Assembly: GCA_002269645.1 (NCBI GenBank)
Contig: NIVC01002623.1
Coordinates: 91,404-155,403, forward strand
Direction of reading: 5' to 3'
Origin: Macrostomum lignano
Lineage: Eukaryota
DNA: 64,000 nucleotides
The position numbers and the translations under genes are program-made. The notes below the pieces were generated by a model that did no database searches, was not told the origin of the DNA, and worked only from the letters and a program-made list of their open reading frames with translations. Below are positions 1-59,383 of the stretch, piece by piece; within the stretch, counting starts at the first letter, position 1, and the number at the start of each line of letters is the position of its first letter.

Positions 1-92
1 GAATAGTTGAGCTGGATGTAAAATACGGTCGTAAAATCGCCTCGCGCCTGCTGAGATGAATAATAAAAAATCTCTGTGGATCAGATTTGCTA

Positions 93-690
93 TTCCGAAA
101 CTGATTCTGAGTGAATCCGAAACTGATTCTGAGTGATTCCGAAACTGATTCTGAATGACACCGAAACTGATTCTAAGTGATTCCGAAACTGATTCTGAGT
201 GATTCCGAAACTGATTCTGAATGACACCGAAACTGATTCTGGGTGATTCCGAAACTGATTCTGAGGGATTCCGAAACTGATTCTGAGTGATTCCGAAACT
301 GATTCTGAATAATTCCGAAACTGATTCTGGGTGATTCCGAAACTGATTCTGAATAATTCCGAAACTGATTCTGGGTGATTCTGAGTGATTCCGAAACTGA
401 TTCTGGGTGATTTTGAGTGATTCCGAAATTGGTTCTGAGTGATTCTGAAACTGATTCTGAATAATTCCGAAATTGATTCTGGGTGATTCTGACTGATTCC
501 GAAACTGGTTCTGAGTGATTCCGAAACTGATTCTGAATAATTCTGAAACTGATTCTGAGTGATTCCGAAACTGATTCTGAATAATTCCAAAACTGATTCT
601 GAATGACACCGAAACTGGTTCTGGGTGATTCTGAGTGATTTCGAAACTGAATCTGAGCGATTCCAAAACTGATTCTATATTTGAATCACT
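93..690. repeat. Minisatellite, 22 bp unit (TTCCGAAACTGATTCTGAGTGA)
   Basis: CCGAAACTGA recurs at 95, 117 and onward; ORF 90..590 is a translation of the array. Confidence 0.95.
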
Positions 691-1120
691 TCGAAATTAG
701 AAACAGATTGTGAGTAATTTTTAGTGATATCTTGCCAAGCTTTTTAATAAAAAAACTGGGAGAGGCTCACTTCCATGGCTTCTGTGTTCCCTGCCTGAGT
801 TCTTTGGAAAGCCATCAAACTGCAAATAACTTTCACCAGTCCAGTTTCTGGACACTGCGACACCACACGTCAGCACCGACTTTGTCCCGTTGTTAGAACA
901 AGTTCCCAACTTTTTCTGCCATTTAAACAAAGGAGAATTCACAAAAACACCGGGGCTACAGGGCCAAATAAGCGAGCAAGTTGGGACTGCGTACGGCGGC
1001 ACTTCAGGGCCGAGAGTGGGGCCGGCGCCGCGTGCTGGACAAGGCTGGACTCGAGCCTGCTTGTCAGCGGCACTGCCCGACTGTGCTTGGGATGCCGGCT
1101 TTGTGCAGCTGGGTGCTCAA

Positions 1121-1735
1121 CTGAGGATCTGGGAGGCTGGCTCAGCAACTGAGGATCTGGGAGGCTGGCTCAGCAACTGAGGATCTGGGAGGCTGGCTCA
1201 GCAACTGAGGATCTGGGAGGCTGGCTCAGCAACTGAGGATCTGGGAGGCTGGCTCAGCAACTGACACTCTGGGAGGCTGGCTCAGCAACTGAGGATCTGG
1301 AAGGCTGGCTCAGCAACTGAGGATCTGGGAGGCTGGCTCAGCAACTGAGGATCTGGGAGGGCGGCGGTGGCCCAGCAGCTGAGGATCTGGGAGGCTGGCT
1401 CAGCAACTGACACTCTGGGAGGCTGGCTCAGCAACTGACACTCTGGGAGGCTGGCTCAGCAACTGAGGATCTGGGAGGCTGGCTCAGCAACTGAGGATCT
1501 GGGAGGGCGGCGGTGGCCCAGCAGCTGAGTATCTGGGAGGCTGGCTCAGCAATTGAGGATCTGGGAGGCTGGCCCAGCAACTGAGGATCTGGGAGGCTGG
1601 CCCAGCAATTGAGGATCTGGGAGGCTGGTCCAGCAACTGAGGATGTGGGAAGCTGGCCCAGCAACTGAGGATCTGGGAGGCTGGCCCAGCAACTGAGGAT
1701 CTGGGAGGCTGGCTCAGCAACTGCAGCTCCAGCAA
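1121..1735. repeat. Minisatellite, 28 bp unit (GAGGATCTGGGAGGCTGGCTCAGCAACT)
   Basis: Unit starts at 1123, 1151 and onward; same family as 7062-9105. Confidence 0.95.
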
Positions 1736-2659
1736 CTGCTACACACTTGAATCTAGCAGCTTACTAACAGCAGTAAGCCAACGGATTGAGAAAGCAGAAA
1801 CCAAGCCGGAACTCAAAAGAAATTCCCAAGGCAGGAAAAAAGACAAAAAACCCACTGGGACGGCCATAGATTGATTGCAGTGAATTGCGACTCAAAGCAG
1901 CGGGGGTCCGCAAACCTCAGAGATACCCCTGGCGGGGGCGGCCCACCTGGACAGGAAAATAGCAACCAATTAAGATGAGCAATAAGAGAGCTGCGGGGGA
2001 GGGGGAGAGGGTTAGAGCCAGGCCGTTACCAGGCCGTTGCCAAGGCGGTTGCCGACTGCAGCTGCGGTCGCGTAATGATCACATCGCATTGCCGCATTTG
2101 GCAGGCCATGTGGAAGGCCGGGGACTCAAGTGGGCGGGTCGCCAAGGCCGATGGGGGGGGGGGTCCCCCGAGCTCGATTCGATAGATCTGATTGCCAGCC
2201 TATTGTTCTCAACAACAACTGGCCCAGATGATGACATCTGGCCAGTCTGCATCCAGTGGATTGTCAGGCACGAACTCAATCTACAGTTGATTAGAAACCG
2301 TTTACAACAAACTGCTTGGATATTCGATTGCCGGCCCACTTCACAGATTTAATTACGCGAGCGTTGAGGACCCTTGATCGGAATCTGGGTCAGCCGGGAC
2401 TCTCGCAGCTAAATTGATTTACAGAATGCATAAATCATAACTGCAGCGATCTGTCAATCAGTGTGCACTGGGATGTCATTTGTCACACGCGGCTTTAATA
2501 AAGAAAATAAAAAAATCCAGATAAAAAATTCAGTCAAATGCCAAAAATTTTGCTGTGGAACAGAGCCTGTATATCAATTTGATCAACCCGGTCCCATCTG
2601 ACTTTATGATTATTAATTTGCTAGTGAAAGGAAAAAGTGGAACAACTGTCAATTAATTC

Positions 2660-3415
2660 CACTCACTCCCCAGCAATCAAGTCACTCCCCAGCAATCCCA
2701 GTCACTCCCCAGCAATCCCAGTCACTCCCCAGAAATTCCAGTCACTCCCCAGCAATCCCAGTCACTCCCCAGAAATCCCAGTCACTCCCCAGCAATCCCA
2801 GTCACTCCCCAGCAATCCCAGTCACTCCCCAGCAATCCCAGTCACTCCCCAGCAATCCCAGTCACTCCTCAGCATCCCAGTCACTTCTCACCAATCCCAG
2901 TCACTCTCATCAATCCCAGTCACTCCCCAGAAATTTCAGTCACTCCCCAGCAATCCCAGTCACTCCCCAGCAATCCCAGTCACTCCCCAGAAATCCCAGT
3001 CACTCCCCAGCAATCCCAGTCACTCCCCAGCAATCCCAGTCACTCCCCAGCAATCCCAGTCACTCCCCAGCAATCCCAGTCACTCCCAAGCAATCTCAGT
3101 CACTCCCAAGCAATCCCAGTCACTCCCCAGCAATCCCAGTCACTCCCCAGCAATCCCAGTCACTCCCCAGCAATCCCAGTCACTTCCCAGCAATCCCAGT
3201 CACTCCCCAGCAATCCCAGTCACTCCCCAGCAATCCCAGTTACTCCCAAGCAATCCCAGTCACTCCTCAGCAATCCCAGTCACTCCCCAGCAATCCCAGT
3301 CACTCCCCAGCAATCCCAGTCACTCCCCAGCAATCCCAGTCACTCCCCAGCAATCCCAGTCACTCCCAAGCAATCCCAGTCACTCCTCAGCAATCCCACT
3401 CACTCCTCACCAGTC
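2660..3415. repeat. Minisatellite, 20 bp unit (CACTCCCCAGCAATCCCAGT)
   Basis: Direct tandem units; same family as 9445-10335. Confidence 0.95.
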
Positions 3416-3745
3416 AGTCACAGAGTGAATCAAAAAAGAAACTCTACATTATCAGTCTGTTTTATTATGGCTTCAGCGCCTTTTGAAACTACAGAATTTA
3501 TATATACTCGTAGTTTATTAAAAACTCAGTCCCTGGCTCCATACTGTCTGCATTAATGACGTCTATAAATAAGAACAATTTACGAGTAATTAGCGTTCAA
3601 AAATTAATGTACGCCAACTTCTACTATCAGTAGGTAGGTTAAGATATTGCTGTATGATCAGTTTAGTTGAACGCTTTTTACCATAGACAGGCCTAATGAA
3701 GAGATCGATTGCATCACACTCGCGCCTTACTGCATGCCGGCGCAG

Positions 3746-6700
3746 TCACGGCCGCGCATCCGCAGCCAGCAGGACCTGGACGTCTCCGAATATCGCAGCC
3801 TCAGCGTCTTCGTCCCGCAGAGCCGCGAACTCCCGCGCCAGCCGCTCCAGGCGGTCGCTGCCGCCGCCGTCGCCGAGGCCGAGCAGCACCTGCGGAATGT
3901 CGACGTAGAAGTCGCCGAGCGGCGAGCGAAGCCGGTCCTCGGCGCTGCTCACTGCAAAGCGCGCGTTCGGGCGGCCCGCGAGCCGCGGCGCAAGTCGCTC
4001 GGCCAGTCTTGGCTCGGGGTCAACCAAGGTCACGCCGCCGGACGGGCCCACCGTGTCGCAGTAGAAATCGAGCAGCGGGGCGAAGCCGCAGCCCAGCTCG
4101 AGCACCTGCTGGCCTGGCAGCGGGGGAGCGTCAAGAAAGCATCCGGTTTTGTGCTGTTACCCAATGTAGCATCAGGCAGGGACCGGGCTCTGCATGCCGG
4201 TAGCAGGAGATAGATCATGACTCTCACTGTATGACCTCTGGAGTGACCTCTGTCAATCATTATGACTCTCACGGGATGACCTCTGGAGTGACCTCTGTCA
4301 ATCATTATGACTCTCACGGGATGACCTCTGGAGTGACATCTGTCAATCATCATGACTCTCACTGTATGACCTCTGAAGTGATCTCTGTCAATCATCATGA
4401 CTCTCACTGTATGACCTCTGGAGTGACCTCTGTCAATCATCATGACTCTCACTGTATGACCTCTGGAGTGATCTCTGTCAATCATCATGACTCTCACTGT
4501 ATGACCTCTGGAGTGACCTCTGTCAATCATCATGACTCTCACTGTATGACCTCTGGAGTGATCTCTGTCAATCATCATGACTCTCACGGGATGACCTCTG
4601 GAGTGACCTCTGTCAATCATCATGACTCTCACTGTATGACCTCTGGAGTGATCTCTGTCAATCATCATGACTCTCACGGGATGACCTCTGGAGTGACCTC
4701 TGTCAATCATCATGACTCTCACTGTATGACCTCTGGAGTGATCTCTGTCAATCATCATGACTCTCACGGGATGACCTCTGGAGTGATCTCTGTCAATCAT
4801 CATGACTCTCACGGGATGACCTCCGGAGTGACCTCTGGCAATCATCATGACTCTCACGGGATGACCTCCGGAGTGACCTCTGTCAATCATTATGACTCAC
4901 GGGATGACCTCTGGAGTGACCTCTGTCAATCATCATGACTCTCACGGGATGACCTCTGGAGTGACCTCTGTCAATCATCATGACTCTCACGGGATGACCT
5001 CTGGAGTGACCTCTGTCAATCATCATGACTCTCACTGTATGACCTCCGGAGTGACCTCTGTCAATCATCATGACTCTCACGGGATGACCTCCGGAGTGAC
5101 CTCTGTCAATCATTATGACTCACGGGATGACCTCTGGAGTGACCTCTGTCAATCATCATGACTCTCACGGGATGACCTCCGGAGTGACCTCTGGCAATCG
5201 TCATGACTCTCACGGGATGACCTCCGGAGTGACCTCTGTCAATCATTATGACTCACGGGATGACCTCTGGAGTGACCTCTGTCAATCATCATGACTCTCA
5301 CGGGATGACCTCTGGAGTGATCTCTGTCAATCATCATGACTCTCACGGGATAACCTCTGGAGTGATCTCTGTCAATCATCATGACTCTCACTGTATGACC
5401 TCTGGAGTGATCTCTGTCAATCATCATGACTCTCACTGTATGACCTCTGGAGTGACCTCTGTCAATCATCATGACTCTCACTGTATGACCTCTGGAGTGA
5501 TCTCTGTCAATCATCATGACTCTCACTGTATGACCTCTGGAGTGACCTCTGTCAATCATCATGACTCTCACTGTATGACCTCTGGAGTGATCTCTGTCAA
5601 TCATCATGACTCTCACGGGATGACCTCTGGAGTGACCTCTGTCAATCATCATGACTCTCACGGGATGACCTCTGGAGTGACCTCTGTCAATCATCATGAC
5701 TCTCACGGGATGACCTCTGGAGTGACCTCTGTCAATCATCATGACTCTCACTGTATGACCTCTGGAGTGATCTCTGTCAATCATCATGACTCTCACTGTA
5801 TGACCTCTGGAGTGACCTCTGTCAATCATCATGACTCTCACTGTATGACCTCTGGAGTGATCTCTGTCAATCATCATGACTCTCACTGTATGACCTCTGG
5901 AGTGACCTCTGTCAATCATCATGACTCTCACTGTATGACCTCTGGAGTGATCTCTGTCAATCATCATGACTCTCACGGGATGACCTCTGGAGTGACCTCT
6001 GTCAATCATCATGACTCTCACTGTATGACCTCTGGAGTGATCTCTGTCAATCATCATGACTCTCACGGGATGACCTCCGGAGTGACCTCTGGCAATCATC
6101 ATGACTCTCACGGGATGACCTCTGGAGTGACCTCTGTCAATCATTATGACTCACGGGATGACCTCTGGAGTGACCTCTGTCAATCATCATGACTCTCACT
6201 GTATGACCTCTGGAGTGACCTCTGGCAATCATCATGACTCTCACGGGATGACCTCCGGAGTGACCTCTGTCAATCATTATGACTCACGGGATGACCTCTG
6301 GAGTGACCTCTGTCAATCATCATGACTCTCACGGGATGACCTCTGGAGTGACCTCTGTCAATCATCATGACTCTCACGGGATGACCTCTGGAGTGACCTC
6401 TGTCAATCATCATGACTCTCACGGGATGACCTCCGGAGTGACCTCTGTCAATCATCATGACTCTCACGGGATGACCTCCGGAGTGACCTCTGTCAATCAT
6501 CATGACTTTCACGGGATGACCTCCGGAGTGATCTCTGTCAATCATCATGACTCTCACTGTATGACCTCCGGAGTGACCTCTGTCAATCATCATGACTCTC
6601 ACGGGATGACCTCCGGAGTGACCTCTGGCAATCATCATGACTTTCACGGGATGACCTCCGGAGTGATCTCTGTCAATCATCGTGACCATTTGCAGAATGG

Positions 6701-6924
6701 GCAGCTCCCAAGATCAAGTAAATGAAAGCAATCTGAGCAGAGGCTGGCACCGGCCCCTTCACTCCCACGCACCTTCTGCTAGACCGGCTTTCTTCAGAAA
6801 TTTGATCATCCTATCCTGCTTCAGCTCGAATTCGCGCCTCAGGATGTCCTCCATGGCAAAGAAGTCGTGGTGGTGAGGGTCGCTATGAGCCTTGATGCCT
6901 CGGCTGCTGGTGGCTGTGCGACAT
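3746..6924 (-). pseudogene. SAM-dependent methyltransferase copy 1, internally deleted mosaic. Exons 6924..6773 and 4113..3746
   Basis: Exon 1 encodes ...HHHDFFAMEDILRREFELKQDRMIKFLKKAGLAEG with donor G|GTGCG; exon 2 after CCAG| encodes QQVLELGCGFAP (motif I). Versus copy 2 it lacks 108 codons in frame (SAED joined to RLRSP). The ATG at 6924 (MSHSHQQ) is out of frame by one base; an in-frame ATG exists at 6854. Confidence 0.8.
4216..6680. repeat. Intronic minisatellite, 45 bp unit (ATGACCTCTGGAGTGACCTCTGTCAATCATCATGACTCTCACTGT)
   Basis: ATGAC phase at 4321 and 4366; fills the intron of methyltransferase copy 1. Confidence 0.95.
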
Positions 6925-7061
6925 TTGCTGCTCAAGCTGGAGCATTTTTTTGCTGGTGCAACTTAAACTCTTGCAGAAAAATTAAAGCAGCCTTGAAAAT
7001 TCGAACTTCAACTCCAATTTCTAGATTACTGGCGCTAGATTAGCAATCCATTTCATGTGCC

Positions 7062-9105
7062 AGCCTGGGAATCTGGGAGGGCGGCAGCGGTGGCCCAGTA
7101 ACTGAGGATCTGGGAGGCTGGCCCAGCAACTGAGGATCTGGGAGGCTGGCCCAGCAATTGAGGATCTGGGAGGCTGGCCCAGCAACTGAGGATCTGGGAG
7201 GCTGGCCCAGCAACTGACACTCTGGGAGGCTGGCCCAGCAACTAAGGATCTGGGAGGCTGGCTTAGCAACTGAGGATCTGGGAGGCTGGCCCAGAAACTG
7301 AGGATTTGGGAGGCTGGACCAGCAATTGAGGATCTGGGAGGCTGGCCCAGCAACTGACACTCTGGGAGGCTGGCCCAGCAACTGACACTCTGGGAGGCTG
7401 GCCCAGCAACTAAGGATCTGGGAGGCTGGCCCAGAAATTAAGGATCTGGGAGGCTGGCCCAGCAATTGAGGATCTGGGAGGCTGGCCCAGCAACTGAGGA
7501 TCTGGGAGGCTGGCCCAGCAACTGACACTCTGGGAGGCTGGCCCAGCAACTAAGGATCTGGGAGGCTGGCTTAGCAACTGAGGATCTGGGAGGCTGGCCC
7601 AGAAACTGAGGATTTGGGAGGCTGGCCCAGCAATTGAGGATCAGGGAGGCTGGCCCAGCAACTCAGGATCTGGAAGGCTGGCCCAGCAACTGAGGATCTG
7701 GGAGGCTGGCCCAGCAACTGAGGATCAGGGAGGCTGGCCCAGCAACTGAGGATCAGGGAGGCTGGCCCAGCAACTGAGGATCTGGAAGGCTGGCCCAGCA
7801 ACTGAGGATTTGGGAGGCTGGCCCAGAAACTGAGGATCAGGGAGGCTGGCCCAGCAACTGAGGATCTGGGAGGCTGGCCCAGCAATTCAGGATCTGGGAG
7901 GCTGGCCCAGCAACTGAGGATCTGGAAGGCTGGCCCAGCAACTGACACTCTGGGAGGCTGGCCCAGCAACTGAGGATCAGGGAGGCTGGCCCAGCAACTG
8001 AGGATCAGGGAGGCTGGCCCAGCAATTGAGGATCAGGGAGGCTGGCCCAGCAACTGAGGATCAGGGAGGCTGGCCCAGCAACTGAGGATCAGGGAGGCTG
8101 GCCCAGCAATTGAGGATCTGGGAGGCTGGCCCAACAACTGAGGATCAGGGAGGCTGGCCCAGCAACCGAGGATCAGGGAGGCTGGCCCAGCAATTGAGGA
8201 TCTGGGAGGCTGGCCCAACAACTGAGGATCAGGGAGGCTGGCCCAGCAACTGAGGATCAGGGAGGCTGGCCCAGCAATTCAGGATCTGGGAGGCTGGCCC
8301 AGCAACTGAGGATCTGGAAGGCTGGCCCAGCAACTGAGGATCTGGGAGGCTGGCCCAGCAACTGAGGATCTGGGAGGCTGGCCCAGCAACTGAGGATCAG
8401 GGAGGCTGGCCCAGCAACTGAGGATCAGGGAGGCTGGCCCAGCAACTGAGGATCTGGGAGGCTGGCCCAGCAACTGAGGATCTGGGAGGCTGGCCCAGAA
8501 ACTGAGGATCAGGGAGGCTGGCCCAGCAACTGAGGATCTGGGAGGCTGGCCCAGCAATTCAGGATCTGGGAGGCTGGCCCAGCAACTGAGGATCTGGAAG
8601 GCTGGCCCAGCAACTGACACTCTGGGAGGCTGGCCCAGCAACTGAGGATCAGGGAGGCTGGCCCAGCAACTGAGGATCAGGGAGGCTGGCCCAGCAATTG
8701 AGGATCAGGGAGGCTGGCCCAGCAACTGAGGATCAGGGAGGCTGGCCCAGCAACTGAGGATCAGGGAGGCTGGCCCAGCAATTGAGGATCTGGGAGGCTG
8801 GCCCAACAACTGAGGATCAGGGAGGCTGGCCCAGCAACTGAGGATCAGGGAGGCTGGCCCAGCAATTGAGGATCTGGGAGGCTGGCCCAACAACTGAGGA
8901 TCAGGGAGGCTGGCCCAGCAACTGAGGATCAGGGAGGCTGGCCCAGCAATTCAGGATCTGGGAGGCTGGCCCAGCAATTGAGGATCTGGGAGGCTGGCCC
9001 AGCAACTGGGGATCAGGGAGGCTGGCCCAGCAACTAAGGATCTGGGAGGCTGGCCCAGCAATTGAGGATCTGGGAGGCTGGCCCAGCAATTGAGGATCTG
9101 GGAGG
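7062..9105. repeat. Minisatellite, 28 bp unit (GAGGATCTGGGAGGCTGGCCCAGCAACT)
   Basis: About 70 tandem units with higher-order variant patterns. Confidence 0.95.
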
Positions 9106-9444
9106 TGGCGGGGGTCGGGCTAACGATTTCTCTAAACTGAAAAAGCATAAATCAGAAGCACAGAGCCCATCTGTCAATCAGTAAGCACTGGGGTGTCATT
9201 AGTGACAATCGGGTATTATATAAATAACGAAACTCAAAGTGTCAACAAAGCTTTTATTTTATTCGATGAACTGAATTTCCAGGCAAAAAACGCAATCAGA
9301 CTCTCTCAGACTCTCTGGCATGAGCTGTCATTCCTGCTTTGGAAGAGAATAAGAAAATTGAAAGCAAACCTCTGAATATTTAACAATAATCTCAGTACCT
9401 TTTTGCCAGTTGTCACTCAAACTACTTTTAATAATTTGCCATCA

Positions 9445-10335
9445 GTCCCAGTCACTCCTCATCAATCCCAGTCACTCCTCACCAATCCCAGTCACTCCTC
9501 ACCAATCCCAGTCACTCCTCACCAATCCCAGTCACTCCTCACCAATCCCAGTCACTCCTCACCAATCCCAGTCACTCCTCACCAATCCCAGTCACTCCTC
9601 ACCAATCCCAGTAACTCCTCACCAATCCTAGTCACTCTCATCAATCCTAGTCACTCTCATCAATCCCAGTCACTCCCCAGCAATCCCAGTCACTCCTCAC
9701 CAATCCCAGTCACTCCTCACCAATCCCAGTCACTCCTCACCAATCCCAGTCACTCCTCACCAATCCCAGTCACTCCTCACCAATCCCAGTCACTCTCATC
9801 AATCCCAGTCACTCCTCACCAATCCTAGTCACTCTCATCAATCCCTGTCACTCCTCACCAATCCCTGTCACTCCTCACTAATCCCTGTCACTCCTCACTA
9901 ATCCCTGTCACTCCTTAGCAATCCCTGTCACTCCTCACCAATCCCAGTCACTCCTCACCAATCCTAGTCACTCTTATCAATCCCAGTCACTCCCCAGCAA
10001 TCCCAGTCACTCCTCAGCAATCCCAGTCACTCCCCAGCAATCCCAGTCACTCTTCAGCAATCCCAGTCACTCCTTAGCAATCCCAGTCACTCCCCAGCAA
10101 TCCCTGCCACTCTCCAGCAATCCCAGTCACTCCCCAGCAATCCCAGTCACTCCCCAGCAATCCCAGTCACTCCTCAGCAATCCCAGTCACTCTTCAGCAA
10201 TCCCAGTCACTCCTCAGCAATCCCAGTCACTCTCCAGCAATCCCAGTCACTCTTCAGCAATCCCAGTCACTCCTTAGCAATCCCAGTCACTCCCCAGCAA
10301 TCCCTGCCACTCTCCAGCAATCCCAGTCACTCCCC
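9445..10335. repeat. Minisatellite, 20 bp unit (CACTCCTCACCAATCCCAGT / CACTCCCCAGCAATCCCAGT)
   Basis: Tandem units running up to the stop codon of methyltransferase copy 2. Confidence 0.95.
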
Positions 10336-10343
10336 CGCTGAAG

Positions 10344-12049
10344 TCACGGACGCTCGGCCGCCACCAGGAGGTTAATGTTGGAGAACAGCTCGGCTTCGGG
10401 GTCTCCCTGCTGCAGCGTCGGCAGCCCCTGGCCCAGCAGCTCGGCGACCTCCTCCTTGGTGATGCGGCCGAGGCTGGCCAGCTCATGCAGCGAGTGCTTC
10501 ACGTACGCGTCGACGTAGAAGTCGCCGAGCGGCGAGCGAAGCCGGTCGTGCAGGACGAAGGCGTCCCGAAGGCGCACCTCGAAGCCCGCGGCGGCGAGCG
10601 CGGAGCAGCAGCGGGCGGTGACGGGCGAGGCGGCGGGCCGCAGGAGGTCGGCGAGACGCGCCTGGACGGCCAGGGCGGCCGGGTTGGCGGCCTCGGAGGC
10701 GAACAGCTGCAGGGTGTCGTGAATGAAGTCCAGGATCACCAGGCGGCCGCCAGGACGCAGAGCCGAGCGGACGGCGGCCAGGGCGGTGGCGGTGTCGGCC
10801 AGGTGGTGGTACACGTTGGCCATCACGGCCAGGTCGAAGGCGCCTCCTGCCGGCAGCACCGACGCCAGGTCCTCGGCGCTGCTCACTGCAAAGCGCGCGT
10901 TCGGGCGGCTCGCGAGCCGCGGCGCAAGGCGCTCGGCCAGTCTTGGCTCCGGGTCAACCAAGGTCACGCCGCCGGACGGGCCCACCGTGTCGCAGTAGAA
11001 CTCGAGCAGCGGGGCGAAGCCGCAGCCCAGCTCGAGCACCTGCTGGCCTGGAAGCGGAATGAAGGTGAAGGGTGAGAATAGTAGGGGCTGTATCTTAGTG
11101 GTCCAGCGGCGCTCGTAGATGCCAGCGGCCCAGGCTCGATTCCAAGTGCAGTCAACATTAATTTGGGGCTAAATTGCTTCGCACCTGCTCAGGGGAGTTG
11201 GCGGAATGGGCAGCGATAACGTGCGCCATGGTGCACACAGCCCCCTGACCCCTAATAGAAAGGTGAGAATAGGTTGTGTGTCCCGATTGGGTGAGCACAG
11301 CATGCCTGTGCAGCATACAGGGGGACCCAAAGGCACTTTCCAATTCCATCTGTCAACGGAAAACCCGCAGTTAGGAATGCCCATTCTGCCTCTCCGGATC
11401 TCAGGCCCGACAATTTCTATCAACTCGACCGCGACCTGAGGGCGGACAAAGCAACCATCCACCTTCTGGACTCTTCGTAGGGGGGCCGCGCTGCGGACAC
11501 CAGCACCACCGAAGCTCCCTGTGTGACAGCGCAGCACCAGCTGGATGGTCAGGTGCACCAGGTTATCCTGGATGGATCAAGTGTGCCAGGTGTGTCCTGG
11601 ATGGGTCAGGTGTACCAGGTGTGTCCTGGATGGGTCAAGTGTGCCAGGGGTGCCCTGGATGGGTCAGGTGTACCAGGTGTGTCCTGGATGGGTCAGGTGT
11701 ACCAGGTGTGTCCTGGATGGGTCAGGTGTACCAGGTGTGTCCTGGATGGGTCAGGTGTACCAGGTGTGTCCTGGATGGGTCAGGTGTACCAGGTGTGTCC
11801 TGGATGGGTCAGGTGTACCAGGTGTGTCCTGGATGGGTCAGGTGTGCCAGGTGTGTCCTAGATAGGTCAGGTGTGTCCTGGATGGGTCAGGTGTGTAGAA
11901 ATCTGCATTTCCTTTTCACTCTCACCTTCTGCTAGACCGGCTTTCTTAAGAAAGTCAGTCAGCCTGTCCTTCTTCAGTTCAAAGTCGCGCTTTAAGATGT
12001 CTTCGAAGTCAAAAAAGTCGTGTTGATGCTGCTGGTGACTCTGCGACAT
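10344..12049 (-). CDS. Class I SAM-dependent methyltransferase (UbiE / Methyltransf_11-31-like), 275 aa. Exons 12049..11926 and 11047..10344
   Basis: Phase-1 GT-AG intron (GAAG|GTGAG ... TTCCAG|GC) gives LKKAGLAEGQQVLELGCGFAP (motif I), then VTLVDPEP, FDLAVMANVYHHL and LRPGGRLVILD. 124+704=828 nt, open frame. Confidence 0.9.
11082..11261 (+). mobile_element. tRNA-derived SINE-like insertion in methyltransferase intron
   Basis: A-box-like TAGTGG and B-box-like GGCTCGATTCC; flanked by 11 bp direct repeat GGTGAGAATAG at 11071-11081 and 11262-11272. Confidence 0.55.
11545..11895. repeat. Intronic minisatellite, 29 bp unit (GGATGGGTCAGGTGTACCAGGTGTGTCCT)
   Basis: Tandem units next to the exon 1 donor of copy 2. 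Confidence 0.93.
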
Positions 12050-12360
12050 TGCTCAAAAAGCATAAGCAGGTTTTTGAAAGCGCAATTTCTAATTCATAAC
12101 CGCCAATATGAGCAGCCTTGAAGCTATACTCGGGTTTCTAAAGTAGCTAATACTTGGGCTAGGTTGGCAATTCATACGATTGAATTAGTCAAGGGTTAGG
12201 GGCTAGACTGGGTGTCGCCGAACAAAACCAAGTAATCCCGCTCAGAAAATTGACATTGACAACAGGCACTTAAGAGCCAGAGTGGAATTATAAATTGCTG
12301 TAGAAAACATTCAAGCATTTTTTATGGCTCTATGGAAAAGAACGTTGCGATTTATCCGCA

Positions 12361-12835
12361 TCACTCCGCTAGCACCCCCCTCACTCCACTGGCACCCACC
12401 TCCCTCCGCTAGCACCCCCCTCACTCCACTGGCACCCACCTCCCTCCGCTAGCACCCCCCTCACTCCACTGGCACCCACCTCCCTCCGCTAGCACCCCCC
12501 TCACTCCACTGGCACCCACCTCCCTCTGCTAGCACCCCCCTCACTCCACTGGCACCCACCTCCCTCCGCTAGCACCCCCTCACTCCACTGGCACCCACCT
12601 CCCTCCGCTAGCACCCCCCTCACTCCACTGGCACCCACTTCCCTCCGCTAGCACCCCCCTCACTCCACTGGCACCCACTTCCCTCCGCTGGAACCCACCT
12701 CACGCCGATGACACCCTAATGGCACCCACCTCACTTCGCTGATACCCACCTCACTCCGCTAACACCCACCTCACTCCGCTAACACCCACCTCACGCCGCT
12801 GACACTCACCTCACGCCGCTGACTCTCACCTCACT
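12361..12835. repeat. Minisatellite, 20 bp subunits in 40 bp dimers (CACTCCGCTAGCACCCCCCT / CACTCCACTGGCACCCACCT)
   Basis: Tandem units; reverse complement of the array at 14855-15070. Confidence 0.93.
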
Positions 12836-13534
12836 CCATTTCATTGGATTATACAAGGGCTAGATTAGCAATGCATTAATTTGTTAGAAATTCACTGCAC
12901 ATCACAAATTACAATGTCATTACTCGTATATATTATGCTACCTAATGCTGAATCGAATATGCAGAGAAATTAATAAAAAAGAGCTTTTGAGCAGTTGATT
13001 TGCGCATCAAATTGATTATCCTTGCATTGTCAGCTGCAGGTGAACTCTCCAGCGGTTGAATAAACTATTGACTTTTTATTTGGAATGCACTCTGACTCAA
13101 TACCAGCTATATAATTGTGAAAGCAGACTGAATTGCAAACAGGCAACAGAAGCAACAAAAGTTTCTTGAAGAAAACCAAAAGTTACAGCGAATTAAATGT
13201 GGGATTCAACACGGCAACTGGCCGACACCGATAAAAAACTGAAAGCAGAAGACAGAGAAGCCAAAACGAGTGTGGGTACTGAAAGGCAGACAATAGAGCT
13301 GAACTTAGCATTGGCCAGGAGCTCGGGAATACTTGCTGTTGGAAAGAAAAAGTTGCTGACAAATGCACCTTTTGATTCAAGAGCCACCAGCGGAACAGGA
13401 TGCTGGAGCGAATGATGATGCAGCTGTAATGGCAGCGTTTAACAAATATAACAACCTTTACTATATTGTTATTCAAGTCACGTCAAGAGAACCCTGGATA
13501 CGAGCGTAGCGCAAAGGGGACTAATTAATGAAGC

Positions 13535-14190
13535 AGTCACGTGATCTCTGGGGATCCACTATTCAGTCACGTGATCTCTGGGGATCCACTATTCAGTCAC
13601 GTGATCTCTGGGGATCCACTATTCAGTCACGTGATCTCTGGGGATCCACTATTCAGTCACCTGATCTCTGGGGATCCACTATTTAGTCACGTGACATCTG
13701 GGATCCACTATTCAGTCACGTGATATCTGATGATCCACTATTCAGTCATGATCTCTGATAATCCACTATTCAGTCACCTGATCTCTGGGATCCACTATTC
13801 AGTCACATGATCTCTAAGGATCTGCTATTCAGTCACGTGACCTCTGGGATCCACTATTCAGTCACATGACCTCTGATGATCCACTATTGAGTCACGTGAT
13901 CTCTGGGGATCCACTATTCAGTCACGTGATCTCTGGGGATCCACTATTCAGTCACATGATCTCTGGGGATCCACTATTGAGTCACGTGATCTCTGGGGAT
14001 CCACTATTGAGTCACGTGATCTCTGGGGATCCACTATTGAGTCACGTGATCTCTGGGGATCCACTATTGAGTCACGTGATCTCTGGGGATCCACTATTCA
14101 GTCACGTGATCGCTGATGATCCACTATTCAGTCACGTGATCGCTGATGATCCACTATTCAGTCACATGATCCCATTATTCAGTCACGTGA
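13535..14190. repeat. Minisatellite, 30 bp unit (CAGTCACGTGATCTCTGGGGATCCACTATT)
   Basis: Tandem units (VISGDPLFSH pseudo-ORFs). Confidence 0.95.
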
Positions 14191-14854
14191 TTTCAAAGCC
14201 GGGTTCCTGAAGAAGACACATCTCATGACTCGGTTCAAGCCCGTGTGGCGTGAGAAAAATCCAATAAAATACAAATTGAAACAAAATCCAATTAAAACAA
14301 AGCCATACACAAAGAGACCCAATCACCGATAAACGCGAGCGCAAATGAAGAAAAACAAAAAAGGAAACTCCAAAAACTGTCAATTATTAAATAACCGTCG
14401 AATGAAAAAAGATTGCAACGTTTTCAACAAAAATCTACTCTGCGTGGAAAGACACAAAAGACCTCTTTGGAGCCAAAGTATTTTTATCAAGCAAACGAAA
14501 AAAATAATTTAGGCAAAAATAAGACATCCAATAAATATTTGACACTTATGCGCAAAATGCTCTGCAACAGTGCACAGGAAACACAACAACAACCAGAAAC
14601 CGGTGACCAAAGATCTAACAGCGAACAGAAACAAATAAACCCGCTCAGAAACCATTACATTGATAACAGGTGCCGAAGAGACCAAGCCCGATTGGGATTA
14701 CAAGCATCTATAAATGATGAGCTAATTAAGCAATTTTATACGGCTTTAAGGAAAAAAATTGCATTTATCTGCCGCACTCCGCCGGCAACCACCCCACACT
14801 CCGCTTCGCTCATAATTCGAACCGCTGGAAGCCTCTCCAAAAGCCGCAAGCTCG

Positions 14855-15070
14855 AGTGAGGTGGGTGCTAGCGGAGTGAGGTGGGTGCTAGCGGAGTGAG
14901 GTGGGTGCTAGCGGAGTGAGGTTGGTGCTAGCGGAGTGAGGTGGGTGCGAGCGGAGTGAGGTGGGTGCTATCGGAGTGAGGTGGGTGCTAGCGGAGTGAG
15001 GTGGGTGCTAGCGGAGTGAGGTGGGTGCTAGCGGAGTGAGGTGGGTGCTATCGGAGTGAGGTGGGTGCTC
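14855..15070. repeat. Minisatellite, 20 bp unit (GAGTGAGGTGGGTGCTAGCG)
   Basis: Tandem units just past the RBBP6 stop codon. Confidence 0.93.
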
Positions 15071-15083
15071 AGACACTCTCATT

Positions 15084-15483
15084 CTATAGAGCAAAGCTTT
15101 TGCCCACAGTCTTGTCAATGACGCCGTCGTCCACGGAGTTGACGCGCGCATCGTTATAGTCGCATTTTTCCACAACGAAAATATCGTCCCCAATAGAGCT
15201 GTCGCCGCCGTCAGTCTCGGACTCGCATTCGCCCTCCTCTCGATCCGATTCCGTTCTGTCCGGCAGGGCGGCTGCCGACGCGGCCGAGCAGGCCATCTCT
15301 TCGAGTTTTGCCTTATCGAATTGCACGCTTCCGTCGGTGCGGACAGGGGAGATAACGACTGCGGGGGCGTCGGCGATTGGCTGCTGAGCATCGGGAGCTT
15401 CCACAGGCGCAGTAGCTGCCGCCGATGATGTGCCGCTGCTGCAGTACTGATCGATCATCCTGTTGGTTGTGGCGAATTAGAAA

Positions 15484-15527
<44 letters not shown>

Positions 15528-18500
15528 CGAGCCTGCTATGAGTCTCACGTACCTGGAAAAAGTTCGATAGGCCACCGGGCTCGGGCTGACGGTCACGCGG
15601 CGTCGTTTTGGAATCGGCGAGCTGTCATCGCGGCGACGATCACGCGGACTTCGAGGACTCCGAGGACTGCGCGGACAGCGGCGGCCGCGGTGACGACTGC
15701 GGCTGCGACTGCGGCTTCTACCAGCATCGGCCTTGTCGCTTCTGCCTCGACGTTTGCTGCCGTCATCGGCATTACGGGATCTACCGGAGTGCCGTCTGGA
15801 CGACGATCGGGACCGGGACCGGCGCTGCCGACTGCCGCTGTTTCCATAGTAACGACAGTCCCGAACTGGGCGCCTCGAGCTGCGCGATCGGCCGCCGCGG
15901 TCAACAGCAGCAGGCTGGCCGTGGCGGCCGTCAGCGGATGGAATTTGGTGCGCCAGCTGCGCCGAGCGGAACTCGGCCTCGGTGAGCGGCCGGCCGCCCG
16001 TCGGGCCAGCTGAGTAGATCGGCGCGCCCTGATGGGGCAGCGGGTAGGCCAGGCCGGGCTGGCAGTAGTATCCCAGCTGCTGGTAGGCAGCAGCGTACGC
16101 CATCTGGGCCTGCTGGTAATACTGCACGGCGTAGTCGGCCGCTGTGAAATACCCGCCATTGGCCGCCTGCCATGCGTAGCACTGCGCCGTCTGCTGCTCG
16201 TCCATCGACGCTGGTGGCGGCGGCGGCGTTGGGCCTTTGGACTCGGTCGGAGACGACGGCACTGTGGAGTCTGCGACGGTCGACTGGTTGCGCTGAGGGG
16301 GTGGGGTGGGTGTATCGAAGAGTCAGCCAACTTATGGGGTGTTGTGCAACCCTTCAGGCTGTGTGCAACCCTTCAGGCTGTTGTGTAACCCTTCAGGCTG
16401 TTGTGTAACCCTTCAGGCTGTTGTGTAACCCTTCAGGCTGTTGTGCAACCCTTCAGGCTGTTGTGTAACCCTTCAGGCTGTTGTATAACCCTTCAGGCTG
16501 TTGTGCAACCCTTCAGGCTGTTGTGTAACCCTTCAGGCTGTTGTGCAACCCTTCAGGTGGAAGTTTAACCCTTCAGGCTACTGTGTAACACTTTAGGTGA
16601 CATTTCAGATTGTGCAACCCTCAGGCCGTTCTGTGACCCCTTCAGATGGGTTTTGAACACTTTAGACTGTTGTGTAACCCTTCACAATGTTTTCTAACTC
16701 TTCAGGCTGTTTAAAACCTTCACGCTGCTGGTTAAACCTTCAGGTTGCTATAAGTGTTCCGATAACTTTTGTAAAAAATCTTATGGTAGCTGTTTAAAAC
16801 CTTCAGGTTGTATAATTTATAGAAATCATTTTGGACTGTTGGCAAACAGCAAGCGCACTACTCTACTGTAAGTAGAAAGGCGAACCTGATTGTCAGCAAT
16901 GAACCTGGCGACCGCTTCGCCCAGATTCCGGTTCGGCACTAGGCAGTCAACGTCGGCCACTTTGTCCCGACAGGCCGGGCAGCGGTGCAGGCTGGGGCTG
17001 CCGGCCTCAAATAGGGCGGCGTGGAGGCAGCGCTTGCAGGCGGTGGCGCCGCAGCAGATGAGGATGTGCGGCTCCTGCATCAGCTGGCGGCACAGGAGGC
17101 AGCGCATGGCGCTCGGCACCGATTGGTCGGAGTCCGCGCGGCACTCAGCGGCCCTCGAGCCGTCGGCAGCGTCAGCGGCGGCGACGACAACGACGGTAGA
17201 CTGCGCAGGCGGCGACTGGCTAGCGGCGACTATCCCGGCGTCGGGAGACTGCAAGTCGCTATCGACTTCTTGGTCGGCTCGGCGGGACCGGGGATTTTCC
17301 TCGGCGCTGAACGGCCGCTTCTCCTTCTTGCCCTGCGCCTTCGCCTCGCTTCACGGGTGGGGGCGGGGTGCAGGCTGCAGCGGACACTGGGAGTCTCACA
17401 CCTGGACAGGGGGTGGGGTTGGCCCACTGGGAGTCCCACACAGGGACAGGGGGTGGGGTTGGCCCACTGGGAGTCCCACACAGGGACAGGGGGTGGGGTT
17501 GGCCAATCGGCGGGCACTGGGAGTCTCACACAGGGACAGGGGGTGGGGTTGGCCAATCGGCGGGCACTGGGAGTCCCACACAGGGACAGGGGGTGGGGTT
17601 GGCCAATCGGCGGGCACTGGGAGTCCCACACAGGGACAGGGGGTGGGGTTGGCCAATCGGCGGACACTGGGAGTCCCACACCGGGACAATGGGACAGACC
17701 ATCCCAAAAAGCAAGCCGGCCACTCACGCGTCCATCTTGGGCACGGCGTATCGGCCGTCCTTCATCAGGTAGGCGCCGTCCACTTTGGTCGGCAGGATCT
17801 GCAGGAAGTCGCTGGGGATGCCGCTCGGCCGCTGCACCCTGGCCGGGTCCAGTCGATTGCCGGAGCAGTCGGTGAGGCCCGGACACTGGCGGGCCCAGTG
17901 CTGGCCGGACACGCGGCACCGGTTGCAGGTGTAGCCGGCGGGCGGCGGACCGTCCGGTCGGGGCTGCTGGCTGCGGAAGCTGCGGCGGGGCGAGGATGAA
18001 GGAAGAATATGAGAGATTTAATCGCTGTAGGAACTGCTCAGATTGACTCATGGGAATTGTTAGATTCCAGTGCCATTGGGTATCCCTCAGATGCCAGTGT
18101 CATAGGGAATCCCTCAGATGCCAGTGTCATGGGGAATCCCTCAGATGCCAGTGTCATGGGGAATCCCTCAGATGCCAGTGTCATGGGGAACCCCTCAGAT
18201 GCCAGTGTCATGGGGAATCCCTCAGATGCCAGTGTCATGGGGAATCCCTCAGATGCCAGTGTCATGGGGAATCCCTCAGATGCCAGTGTCATGGGGAATC
18301 CCTCAGATGCCAGTGTCATGGGGAATCCCTCAGATGCCAGTGTCATGGGGAACCCCTCAGATTCCAGTGTCATTTTTCAGATGACAAGTGTCAATGAGAA
18401 ACTTTGGTCTTTTAAATGTCAGAAAAAGCATACATAGATTTTGATTAAAATTTAAACTGGAGGAAACAGAAAGGGACTTCTTAAACTTTAGGTACGTAAA

Positions 18501-21500
18501 ATACTTCCGATTTTTCTGAAACTTTTGCCAGAGTCTTAGAGGCTGTTCAAAATGATAGTAAAGCAAAAAAACTGCAAAAAATTACCTTCACAGTTAACAG
18601 GAGGTCGATTTGTTAATAGTCTACATAATTAGTGATAATTTGATGCAAGCAGTTTCGGAAATTCAGAGAATTGTATGTTTAAAAATTAAACTTTTTACTA
18701 TATTTATTTCTACTAATCTACGTTGTCTTCTCCATTTTAAAGGTAAGTACGGCTGCTGATATCAATTAAACATAGTTTGATAGGATTATAGTTTTTCTCC
18801 ATGGAGGTGTTTGATAACTTGCTGAATTTTTAATTTAAATAAGCTTCATTGCAATCCCCCCCTGGACCCCCTCAGTCTCCAAATTTATCTACCTAATCTT
18901 CAATAGACCCCCATGCCTCTATTGAAGTTTAGGTACGTGAAATCATTTCCTATGAAGATTCTCCCCACCCTAAAACCCCCCATTCCCCATGCCCCGGTGG
19001 TTGGCTTTAAGCTACAAAAAATGAAGTTCAAATTTGAAATCAGCACCATCAAAAACCTCTGTGGAGACAAAATTATGATCCTATCAAAACTGCAACTATT
19101 TTATCTACCTAAAGTTCAACAAGTCCAAGAAGTGACGGTGAGAAAACTCACCGAACTGAGTCGTACTTCTGCGTTGACTGTCGAATAATGAAATCGAGTT
19201 TCTCATCCTCCGTGAGGCCCTCCATCATGGCGAGCTCCTCCTCTTGTTGCTGCTTGGTTTCGTGAAATGGCTGAAACATGGCGTAATAGAGTGGCAATAA
19301 GGAAAAGTTCATTTCCTAATCTCCAAAGAGTCACCGAGACTGCTGTCTATGGCTGTAACTTCACACTCGTCTTGATGAAAAGTTGAAAACGTGGAACCTA
19401 AGTGAAACCTACATAGAACCTACGGGAAAACGATACCTATGTAAACACAGGTGAAACAGGAAAGAAGTGACTCTAGAGACGACTCTAAAACGAGATGTCA
19501 CGGTACAAGTCGCAAAAAAAGCCGTCAAAAAGTCGTCAGAGAATCGATTGCAAGCGACTCTGGGGCCGTAGAGTCCTACCTGAGACATGCTGGAGTTGCT
19601 GTAGAATCACTGAGTTGCGTCTGAAGCGCATCCAACACAACACAGCCGTCCAACACAACGACTGTTGGACGACTTTTTCGCGACTCTTTTACGATTCTGT
19701 AACTCACGTGACGCGCTCGCGACTCAACAGCCGCCTCTCCGTAGCGTTACAGTCGGTTGAGTCGTTTAAAAGTCAATAGTGAGTTGCTTGCAATGACTAT
19801 TTAGCGATTCTTGTCACGGGCATGAGAGCCAATCCCCAAAGATGATATAAATGAGCTTGGATTGCTTTGCATTCTCTGTTGAGTCTCGTCCTACTTACTG
19901 CAAAGCTACCGGATTGGCAAACGTACAAGATAAAAAAGATTTGAAACTAAAATCTGCATCTTTGACTTGAAAATTTGGAGATTCCTTTACCGAATCATTA
20001 TTCGGTAAAGGAACTGAAGCAATGGCTTCTTCTTCTTCAATTTACTCACGCATCAATCATATCATGCACCCCAAGATATCCCAATGGGCTAATCACCTAT
20101 ATTGGCCCGTTTGTGTGTAAATTTTCGCTCAAATCTGATGAACAAATACAGAGCTTGAGGAGTGTCTAAAACCTTTTGACTGTGCCAAGGTAGAAATTCA
20201 CAAATATGGTACACCCTGTATGCCCAAAACCCTCCTATTATTGTTATTATTATTAAACGTTAAGCCCTTGTTCCAGGACACCCGTTGCATCTGGGAGAGA
20301 CATAAGGGGCAGAGAAATAGGATTATTTTCAGAAGTCCTTGACGCGGGCGCCACTATAAACAGTGCCTCTGTCTGTCTGGTCTGTCTGGGGTTGATCTGC
20401 CCTCTCCTTTGAGCCAGCAACAGGATCAAACTGGCTGCAGCCAAAACAACAGAAGCCATTTATAATAGAGACTGGTGCGCGAGTACCAAGCGAAAGCAGT
20501 CGATGAAGCATGCGTTTTCTCTGTGCTAATAGACAGCAAATTCAAGTGCACAGCCTCATGCCTTACACTGGCCTCAGACTGATAGCAGTTCTGCCTCTGC
20601 GGCGACTTTGATCTTTGTCGATGCTTTGAAGAGTACCGCCTCGAAGATCCCGGAGCTTCCAGTCTGGGCGTACGAGCGACCAACACCTGGGTGAACTCCT
20701 GCAGTAGCTCGGCATCGCTGCTGTACACTGCAATGCACCCAAATACAACTGTGGCCTGAGCTGCTGTACACTGCAATGTAATCTACACCGATATTCTTAG
20801 CTGCAATTCCCTAGCCCGATATTCTCAGCTGCAATTCCCCAGCCCGATATTCTCAGCTGCAATTCCCCAGCCCGAGATTCTCAGCTGCAATTCCCCAGCC
20901 CGATATTCTCAGCTGCAATTCCCCAGCCCGAGATTCTCAGCTGCAATTCCCCAGCCCGATATTCTCAGCTGCAATTCCCCAGCCCGAGATTCTCAGCTGC
21001 AATTCCCCAGCCCGATATTCTCAGCTGCAATTCCCCAGCCCGAGATTCTCAGCTGCAATTCCCCAGCCCGATATTCTCAGCTGCAATTCCCCAGCCCGAG
21101 ATTCTCAGCTGCAATTCCCCAGCCCGATATTCTCAGCTGCAATTCCCCAGCCCGATATTCTCAGCTGCAATTCCCCAGCCCGATATTCTCAGCTGCAATT
21201 CCCCAGCCCGATATTCTCAGCTGCAATTCCCCAGCCCGAGATTCTCAGCTGCAATTCCCCAGCCCGATATTCTCAGCTGCAATTCCCCAGCCCGATATTC
21301 TTGGCTGCAATTCCCCAGCCCGAGCTCACCTTTGCCATCTTCGGCAGACAGCTGCAAGTCGTAGTCCGCACCTGTGAGTCCGCACTTGTCCCGAATGGCA
21401 GCCTTGAGATCTCGCACGCTCAGTGCGGAGCCGCTGATGCGCACGGCGTCCCAGCTCAGGCCGGACTTGAACCGATAGTAGATCACGGACACGCCGCCGG

Positions 21501-21540
21501 CGAGGGGTGCAGCAGCCGCAGACGGGGCGGCTCTCAGCAT
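15084..21540 (-). CDS. RBBP6: RBBP6 / Mpe1-family E3 ligase and 3'-processing factor (DWNN, zinc knuckle, RING, RS-rich tail), about 773 aa. Exons 21540..21330, 20727..20567, 19270..19152, 17979..17728, 17348..16886, about 16292..15553, 15459..15084
   Basis: DWNN VIYYRFKSGLSW..VRDLKAAI..DYDLQL; EDEKLDFIIRQSTQKYD; knuckle GPPPAGYTCNRCRVSGQHWARQC; GIPSDFL..GAYLMKDGRYAVPKMDAEAKAQGKKEKRPF; RING CLLC..CCGATACKRC..CPAC..PNRNLGEAVARF. All intron phases are compatible; total 2322 nt. Confidence 0.93.
16345..16750. repeat. Intronic minisatellite, 20 bp unit (TTGTGTAACCCTTCAGGCTG), degenerating rightward
   Basis: Tandem units in RBBP6 intron 5. Confidence 0.88.
17384..17690. repeat. Intronic minisatellite, 40/50 bp units (CACTGGGAGTCCCACACAGGGACAGGGGGTGGGGTTGGCC[AATCGGCGGG])
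   Basis: CACTGG phase at 17425, 17465, 17515, 17565; RBBP6 intron 4. Confidence 0.9.
18063..18372. repeat. Intronic minisatellite, 27 bp unit (GGGAATCCCTCAGATGCCAGTGTCATG)
   Basis: Tandem units in RBBP6 intron 3. Confidence 0.93.
19470..19822. repeat. Dispersed repeat fragment with a relative at about 30810-30970
   Basis: Shared GACTCT..ACTCTAAAA..GAGA.GT.ACGGTACAAGTCGC and GAGTT..TTGCAAT.ACT..TAGCGATTC.TGTCACGG blocks at both sites. Confidence 0.5.
20790..21322. repeat. Intronic minisatellite, 28 bp unit (CCCGATATTCTCAGCTGCAATTCCCCAG)
   Basis: Begins directly after the RBBP6 exon 1 donor. Confidence 0.95.
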
Positions 21541-21746
21541 GGCTGCGACTGAAATTGAAACAGCTAGAATTATTGAGAAACAGAGTAGCGACGGTTGGTT
21601 ACAGGCGGTGGCATAGACAGCCAAAACCGACTACAAGCATATAAAATGGACAGTTGAAGGTCGCTGAAATGGGGAGGGGCATTGGCCATGAGTGGCAGAC
21701 AAATCACGGGGACTGCAGGAAAAGCTGATTGGCTGGAAGCTAGTAG

Positions 21747-59360: not shown

Positions 59361-59383
59361 CCAGATATTGCATTTAATACAGT

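Follow-up and report, generated by a model that had tools for sequence, protein, structure and literature searches.

Several described groups of class I methyltransferases dependent on S-adenosylmethionine (SAM) can be set beside the gene reported here. The closest are uncharacterised bacterial enzymes of about 260–280 amino acids (aa) of the Methyltransf_11/12/25 type, such as P0038 (Sorangium WP_012235332-like), P0058 (from a Myxococcota/Deltaproteobacteria metagenome-assembled genome, MAG) and the metagenomic P0032 and P0029. Other points of comparison are the natural-product methyltransferases with solved structures, the UbiE/MenG/COQ5 enzymes and, among animal proteins, the thiol S-methyltransferase TMT1A/METTL7A. 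Genes for enzymes, methyltransferases among them, have also been reported to pass from bacteria to animals, for instance to bdelloid rotifers, with supported phylogenies and a much higher identity to the donor as the evidence. The present analysis concerns a stretch of 64,000 nucleotides (nt) from the flatworm Macrostomum lignano (GenBank assembly GCA_002269645.1, contig NIVC01002623.1, positions 91,404 to 155,403 of the forward strand), referred to below as the window, which bears a methyltransferase gene (copy A) and, on the same strand and ~5 kb downstream of it, a degraded second copy (copy B).

Copy A shares with the bacterial enzymes its length, an N-terminal helix, a Rossmann core, a cap and a terminal hairpin ending in ...RP. 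Like the acquisitions reported in other animals, it is a bacterial-type enzyme gene lying beside animal genes, with apparently acquired introns and a lineage-restricted distribution; it differs from them in the weakness of its donor signal. We show here that copy A encodes a class I methyltransferase and is integrated in the genome of the animal, and we weigh an old bacterial acquisition of this gene against its alternatives.

Copy A encodes a class I methyltransferase

The two exons of copy A (Table 1) join into an uninterrupted open reading frame (ORF) of 275 aa. Exon 1 ends in ...GCAGAAG/gtgagag (the slash marks the splice site) and encodes the peptide MSQSHQQHQHDFFDFEDILKRDFELKKDRLTDFLKKAGLAE(G), and the intron closes with a pyrimidine-rich tract followed by ...ttccag/, splitting a Gly codon three residues ahead of VLELGCG, the SAM-binding motif I. 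The spliced protein is 100% identical to BOX15_Mlig033925g1 (P0001), the GenBank model on the 155-kb contig, which reads through the junction as ...GLAEGQQVLELG.... Because the M. lignano gene models in GenBank derive from RNA-seq data assembled with the genome as guide (StringTie/TACO/TBONE; PMC5730564), the splice has indirect transcript support, and the match to a transcript-derived model indicates that copy A is an expressed gene. It is already known in GenBank, where it is labelled hypothetical protein. The original prediction, made from the letters of the window alone, of a 275-aa class I methyltransferase with a single phase-1 intron agrees with the ORF, with the GT..AG splice and with the GenBank model, and the strings that it quoted, DTVGPSGGVTLVD, LRPGGRLVILD and GRITKEEVAELL...LLVAAERP, are all present in the product. 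Base composition is uneven along the gene, with a GC content of 46% in exon 1 versus 72% in exon 2, the latter having an observed/expected CpG ratio of ~1.07 versus 0.70 for the window.

The product of copy A is a class I (Rossmann-fold) SAM-dependent methyltransferase. The Pfam class I models Methyltransf_12, Methyltransf_25, Methyltransf_23, Methyltransf_11 and Methyltransf_31 all score above their gathering cut-offs, the first four with 57.2, 51.1, 50.1 and 47.4 bits (cut-offs 30, 27, 27 and 21.2). Motif I (VLELGCGFAP) contributes E47, G49 and G51, with the third Gly replaced by Ala, and aligns to motif I of MitM; the acidic residue closing strand 2 is D73 (VTLVD73). With an alignment of 123 sequences as input, AlphaFold2 gave a model with a mean predicted local distance difference test (pLDDT) value of 89.2 and a predicted template-modelling (TM) score (pTM) of 0.87, and a single-sequence model (pLDDT 48) was discarded. 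The retained model consists of a long N-terminal helix, a Rossmann-like sheet, a helical insertion past strand 5 and a C-terminal hairpin, its strands (44–48, 68–73, 92–96, 112–118, 138–150, 198–205 and 266–273) forming a seven-stranded sheet, and it has 1117 methyltransferase matches in the PDB at E ≤ 0.001.

Among proteins of known structure, the best sequence matches are MitM (8zc8), NovO (5mgz), RebM (3bus) and CouO (5m58), with E values of 5e-10 to 5e-6 over the core only. The best structural neighbours are the archaeal 3mgg (TM score 0.63–0.69) and GtmA, TmtA and OxaG (~0.6), and TleD (5gm1), AtmM (6uv6), RebM and MitM lie at ~0.5. What copy A and these neighbours have in common is the class, a small-molecule methyltransferase with a cap domain. 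The identity to natural-product methyltransferases is only 17–24% and the cap geometry differs (root-mean-square deviation 5–9 Å), substrate-binding residues are not transferable from them to copy A and, unlike their genes, the flatworm gene is not surrounded by a biosynthetic gene cluster. Fold class and conserved motifs nevertheless point to a soluble enzyme of small-molecule or natural-product type architecture, and it is on them that the predicted activity and substrate class rest. SAM would be contacted by motif I (E47, G49, G51), by D73 and by the E100/D101 loop, and the helical cap would cover the substrate, a small molecule offering an O, N, S or C atom for methylation.

The original prediction had called the protein UbiE-type. 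This holds at the level of the superfamily, since the UbiE profile PF01209 matches residues 35–158 with 31.7 bits (gathering cut-off 20.1), but the match covers only positions 41–163 of the 233 in the profile and the generic models score higher. The NCBIfam equivalogs for UbiE/MenG give 15–33 bits against cut-offs of 158–420, e.g. 32.7 (378) for NF001240, 30.9 (216) for NF001244 and 26.4 (158) for TIGR01934. We therefore rejected copy A as a UbiE orthologue, the NCBIfam UbiE models standing at ~31–33 bits against cut-offs of 216–378. As it is not an orthologue of UbiE, MenG or COQ5, no role with quinones can be deduced for it.

Distribution and conservation of the gene

An exhaustive HMMER scan of 1.84 billion protein cluster representatives, a set whose coverage stops short of unannotated flatworm genomes, returned five matches at E < 1e-30. 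Four of them are M. lignano models of the loci described here, and the fifth, P0024, is the sole homologue from outside M. lignano found at this threshold; no orthologue in other named animals was recovered by the same scan. Judged by these protein sets, the gene appears restricted to this lineage of macrostomid-like flatworms. P0024 lies on a 902-nt genomic contig (L002; Logan SRR31628403_1416922), and it is 54% identical to copy A by tblastn (143 columns) and 60% by alignment, with a GC content at third codon positions (GC3) of 0.69. Its homology to copy A begins right after the ...caacctcaacag/ acceptor, at the phase-1 position before (Q)HILELGCG, as in M. lignano. A donor, GCG/gtgaga, follows ...EAAKA, at a place where M. 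lignano has no intron. Since the homologue shares the position of the first intron, the gene and this intron are older than the split of two well-diverged species.

The locus is assembled a second time on contig NIVC01000337.1 (807 kb; L001), where RBBP6 is followed by a full methyltransferase gene (278 aa) and then by the truncated copy. The M. lignano assembly is described as substantially redundant (PMC5730564), and we take this second locus to be the duplicated counterpart expected in such a genome. The non-coding DNA of the two loci is 95.3–96.3% identical, introns and flanks differing by ~4–4.7%, and exon 2 of copy A differs at 6 of 702 positions (0.85%; three synonymous and three non-synonymous changes). 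Copy A thus changes much more slowly than neutral DNA would, and on this comparison it appears to be selectively maintained. Older M. lignano models in UniProt (P0023, P0002 and P0025; A0A1I8F8K7, A0A1I8IR19 and relatives) join the methyltransferase to RBBP6, or the two copies to each other; they are mis-predictions through frameshifted read-through of these loci, not additional paralogues.

Origin of the gene

Comparison of sequences suggests that the gene may be an old bacterial acquisition by a macrostomid-like flatworm lineage, a proposal for which we see about an even chance. Past E = 1e-30, the HMMER ranking continues with three two-domain bacterial proteins (87–93 bits) and then with hundreds of single-domain proteins at 55–72 bits and 30–45% core identity. 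Sources were looked up for 30 of the top matches, and all those carrying an organism name are bacterial (Sorangium, Polyangiaceae, and MAGs of Myxococcota, Deltaproteobacteria and Pseudomonadota), the remainder coming from metagenomes or raw-read assemblies. The best core score (HMMER) is 74 bits for a bacterial protein versus 38 bits for TMT1A/METTL7A, the best animal protein seen, in keeping with the earlier impression of a greater likeness to prokaryotic small-molecule methyltransferases than to any recognised metazoan one. Furthermore, BLASTP aligns 252 residues of the bacterial P0032 at 31% identity (79 bits), the C-terminal ...DP..LF....VA..RP tail included. Several bacterial proteins of ~270 aa align with copy A over their full length, and a profile made from them retrieves hundreds more, the few named ones being again bacterial (Leisingera, Saccharopolyspora, Chloroflexota) and the others metagenomic or taken from read assemblies.

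These bacterial proteins give the best HMMER scores outside Macrostomum, with 31–45% core identity, but their full-length identity is 25–32% and no single family claims the flatworm protein. In the largest bacterial family, motif I is a near-invariant GGGGGS, against GCGFAP in the flatworm, and the flatworm gene has, unlike the bacterial ones, a spliceosomal intron and an exon-1 peptide that lacks a detectable bacterial match. Queried alone, this peptide found no detectable homologue among the proteins compared. Scans of GTDB genomes, IMG/VR, JGI metagenomes and PLSDB plasmids with one or two query sequences retrieved no closer relative or donor, only core matches of 22–46%.

Several observations weigh against a bacterial origin. 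The landscape of matches is flat, no donor clade emerges and identities outside the lineage are only 25–45%. The gap of 34–36 bits between bacteria (72–74) and TMT1A (38) speaks for transfer, but the alien index computed from it is ~24 natural-log units, which is intermediate with respect to a threshold of 30–45 or more. Sequence databases are overwhelmingly prokaryotic, so that any orphan class I methyltransferase can be expected to find its best match in a bacterium. Taken alone, the C-terminal half scores ~16 bits to bacterial proteins, which is barely significant. Sources were assigned for 30 of the top 150 matches, and the others may include a eukaryotic protein. TMT1A is 30% identical in the core (BLASTP), much like many bacterial matches. 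The GC3 of the methyltransferase gene (0.91) is high and not foreign, as exons of the neighbouring MBTPS1 gene reach 0.79–0.86; GC content and GC3 were rejected as signs of foreign origin on that account. Finally, in the literature and supplements searched we found nothing on the gene identifiers, on horizontal gene transfer in Macrostomum or on activity, substrate or tissue expression, and no paper on this gene or on transfer of a methyltransferase gene into Macrostomum.

The main alternative is vertical descent, in which the gene would be a fast-evolving, lineage-specific offshoot of an ancestral eukaryotic class I methyltransferase, e.g. of the TMT1/METTL7 group, and would owe its bacterial look to prokaryote-heavy databases and to a GC-rich, Ala/Arg/Gly-rich composition. 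A rough neighbour-joining tree of 127 core columns unites the M. lignano protein and P0024 with 91% support. This flatworm clade joins metazoan TMT1A/METTL7A in the base tree, as it does in 43% of the bootstraps, and in the remaining bootstraps it stands beside various bacterial proteins. To this can be added the BLASTP match to TMT1A (30% identity over 148 core residues, 59.7 bits), the failure to find a donor clade among genomes, metagenomes, viral contigs and plasmids, the intron conserved in two species, which makes the gene old in the lineage, and a GC3 inside the host range. On the other hand, the HMMER core score of TMT1A is half that of the bacterial matches, and TMT1A aligns in the core only, its post-core region not aligning at all, whereas the ~270-aa bacterial proteins align over their full length. 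No intermediate was seen in other animal proteomes at E < 1e-30, nor among the 30 source-checked top matches. As to the tree, no long eukaryotic branches were sampled other than the two that it pairs, an artefact to be expected, and long-branch attraction would be the simplest explanation. On balance we regard vertical descent as unlikely, although it deserves serious attention.

A donor other than a bacterium, namely a fungus, a protist, an alga or a large DNA virus carrying a bacterial-type methyltransferase, is decidedly improbable. The fungal enzymes GtmA, TmtA and OxaG do figure among the better structural neighbours and most of the top sequence matches come from metagenomes or raw-read assemblies, but the similarity to the fungal structures is generic (16–24% identity), all organism-named matches are bacterial and the IMG/VR scan gave only a match of 25% identity. 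Contamination or an assembly artefact, i.e. bacterial DNA mis-joined to flatworm DNA, is scarcely credible and was excluded: the GC- and CpG-rich exon 2 would fit it, but it is contradicted by a GT..AG spliceosomal intron whose junction is in a transcript-derived model, by host-type minisatellites within the copy A intron and in both flanks, by RBBP6 synteny on two long, independent contigs whose non-coding DNA is 4–5% apart, and by scans of protein, GTDB, JGI metagenome and plasmid sets that held no near-identical bacterial sequence. The methyltransferase gene is integrated in the animal genome.

The claim of horizontal acquisition in the original prediction thus stands as regards lineage restriction, bacterial nearest matches and integration, but no donor clade, an intermediate alien index and an ambiguous neighbour in the neighbour-joining tree leave it weaker than it was put. 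Returning to bacterial acquisition, the proposed history would begin with the transfer of a bacterial methyltransferase gene into a macrostomid-like flatworm lineage long ago; one or more spliceosomal introns would have been added there, and codon usage would have shifted to a host-like, GC3-rich pattern. Both the bacterial origin and the gain of the intron are what we infer from the comparisons above. The full scenario, in which a macrostomid ancestor captured a bacterial methyltransferase that gained introns, stayed under purifying selection through the M. lignano genome duplication and provides a methylation step other animals lack, is more tentative and falls somewhat short of an even chance.

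Copy B is a degraded duplicate

Copy B departs from copy A in three respects. Its ancestral start (ATGTCGCACAGCCACCAGCAG, ATG 6924) reads MSHSHQQPRHQGS and hits a stop after 13 codons; this ATG is out of frame with the conserved exon DFF...KKAGLAEG, and the conserved frame (...DFFAMEDILRREFELKQDRMIKFLKKAGLAEG) has as its sole ATG an internal one at 6854. A deletion of ~106 codons in exon 2, with GACC microhomology at its junction (~3934/3933), fuses ...SSAED to RLRSPLGDFYVD and takes out strands 4–6, motif II, motif III (LRPGGRLVILD) and the cap. In the tail (last ~50 codons), DNA identity to copy A has fallen to ~65%, the homology being still visible (DAEAAIFGDVQVLLAADARP in copy B versus DPEAELFSNINLLVAAERP in copy A). 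Because only motif I and strands 1–3 remain, copy B cannot form the Rossmann sheet. The same three lesions are borne by copy B on NIVC01000337.1 (P0003). By tblastn, no third copy was found in the window.

The two copies do lie in tandem, as had been predicted, but a start codon, a full ORF and the catalytic motifs are not found in both, since copy B lacks its start-codon frame and ~106 codons and ends in a diverged tail. To speak of an amplified gene is an overstatement for one intact gene and one truncated copy.

Identity to copy A is 97% over the first ~190 nt of copy B exon 2 versus ~80% in exon 1, and this mosaic points to gene conversion across the 5' part of exon 2. Between the two assembled loci, copy B differs at 11 of 531 positions (2.1%), with four synonymous and seven non-synonymous changes, and the flanks by ~4.1%. 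Its evolution looks near neutral from these counts, allowing for conversion from copy A. We read copy B as a probable transcribed pseudogene, kept like copy A through conversion.

It is conceivable that copy B is instead functional as a short non-catalytic protein (~150 aa from ATG 6854) that would regulate copy A or pair with it in a dimer and would retain the N-terminal helix, motif I and strands 1–3. Its annotation as g2 of the transcriptional unit (P0003), in a naming scheme that implies RNA-seq support (PMC5730564), a reading frame open at both assembled loci and an inter-locus divergence below that of the flanks are compatible with such a role. Nevertheless, the ancestral start codon and strands 4–6, and with them the Rossmann sheet, are missing, seven non-synonymous to four synonymous substitutions is a nearly neutral ratio, and the low divergence is accounted for by conversion from copy A, so we hold a functional copy B to be rather improbable. 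The database model that resembles Mlig010638g2 should be marked as a truncated copy.

The duplicated unit and its minisatellites

Each copy is followed by a 20-bp array and a 28-bp array (Table 1). The two 20-bp arrays belong to one family, their consensus differing at 2 of 20 bases after rotation, and so do the 28-bp arrays, with 1 difference in 28 bases after rotation. The duplicated unit therefore consists of the gene, the 20-mer array and the 28-mer array. In the proposed history, a segmental tandem duplication of this unit would have given rise to copy B, which would then have lost its start-codon frame and its catalytic core; gene conversion would have evened out some of its differences from copy A.

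Much of the first 18 kb (92–18373) consists of minisatellites with units of 20–50 bp, which give rise to numerous long, spurious ORFs on either strand. Such a load fits the ~15% of tandem repeats described for the M. lignano genome (PMC5730564).

Genomic neighbourhood

Upstream of the methyltransferase lie RBBP6 and MBTPS1 (site-1 protease), followed at a distance by an ABC transporter gene and a retrotransposon (Table 1). Repeat arrays are also present in the introns of MBTPS1 (e.g. 26918–28360). The GC3 of the ABC transporter, ~0.58, is far below that of the genes at 10–30 kb, and codon composition varies strongly among neighbouring genes. The retrotransposon is arranged in the order of an ORF1-like 525-aa ORF, an ORF with endonuclease (Exo_endo_phos_2) and reverse transcriptase, and an RNase H ORF. 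CT-rich low-complexity repeats with extreme strand skew flank a 260-aa ORF on both sides (32–33 kb and 39–41 kb).

Table 1. Features of the window and of the homologous contig; positions refer to the window unless a contig is named
Feature	Position	Strand	Remarks
Copy A exon 1	11926..12049	minus	ATG at 12049; 124 nt = 41 codons + 1 nt
Copy A intron	11048..11925	minus	878 nt, GT..AG, phase 1
29-bp minisatellite	11541-11874		inside copy A intron
Copy A exon 2	10344..11047	minus	704 nt; stop codon 10346..10344; motif I VLELGCGFAP, post-I D73, motif II FDLAVMANVYHH, motif III LRPGGRLVILD, helical cap, C-terminal beta-hairpin LLVAAERP
20-bp minisatellite	9446..10333		~45 units; directly downstream of copy A
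28-bp minisatellite	7091..9109		~72 units; between copies A and B
Copy B exon 1 remnant	6771..6935	minus	donor AAG/gtgcg; 79.6% DNA identity to copy A exon 1
Copy B intron	4114..6770	minus	2657 nt, nearly filled by 45-bp minisatellite
45-bp minisatellite	4214-6686		~55 units; copy B intron
Copy B exon 2, truncated	3746..4113	minus	
20-bp array	2655-3406		downstream of copy B
28-bp array	1118-1723		follows the 20-bp array of copy B
Further arrays	92-676, 12361-12837, 13534-14171, 14854-15069, 16340-16597, 17385-17688, 18062-18373		
Homologous exon on contig L002	398 nt within 1-902 of L002		acceptor at conserved phase-1 site, phase-0 donor
RBBP6	15084..21624	minus	upstream neighbour of the methyltransferase, ~3 kb away, same strand
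RBBP6, RS-rich C-terminal exons	15084-16262	minus	
RBBP6, RING-like exon	16826-17254	minus	Cys pattern read by eye; no Pfam match for the ORF
RBBP6, DWNN exon	21217-21624	minus	Pfam DWNN, E = 8e-10
MBTPS1/site-1 protease	24133-30465	minus	Pfam MBTP1_N, Peptidase_S8, MBTPS1_3rd
260-aa ORF	37621-38403	minus	no Pfam match; may be exon of an unannotated gene
ABC transporter, large exons	48690-54085	minus	ABC_tran domain; ABCA-like layout, long transmembrane stretches
Non-long-terminal-repeat (non-LTR) retrotransposon	57783-63244	plus	apparently near-complete

Significance

At most, the locus provides a taxon-restricted, possibly bacterially derived animal enzyme gene, and it touches no long-standing open question. 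Whatever the origin of the gene, the more informative name class I SAM-dependent methyltransferase, taxon-restricted, can take the place of hypothetical protein in GenBank. Should the origin be vertical, copy A would be a lineage-restricted orphan methyltransferase. Should the proposed capture be true, the new methylation step could serve to detoxify or to produce a small molecule, and the gene would be among the very few documented functional transfers from a bacterium to a flatworm. With a bacterial origin, the locus would also be a clean and testable example of a functional gene acquired by a flatworm open to transgenesis and RNA interference, uniting the gain of an intron, a dated duplication and a paralogue in decay.

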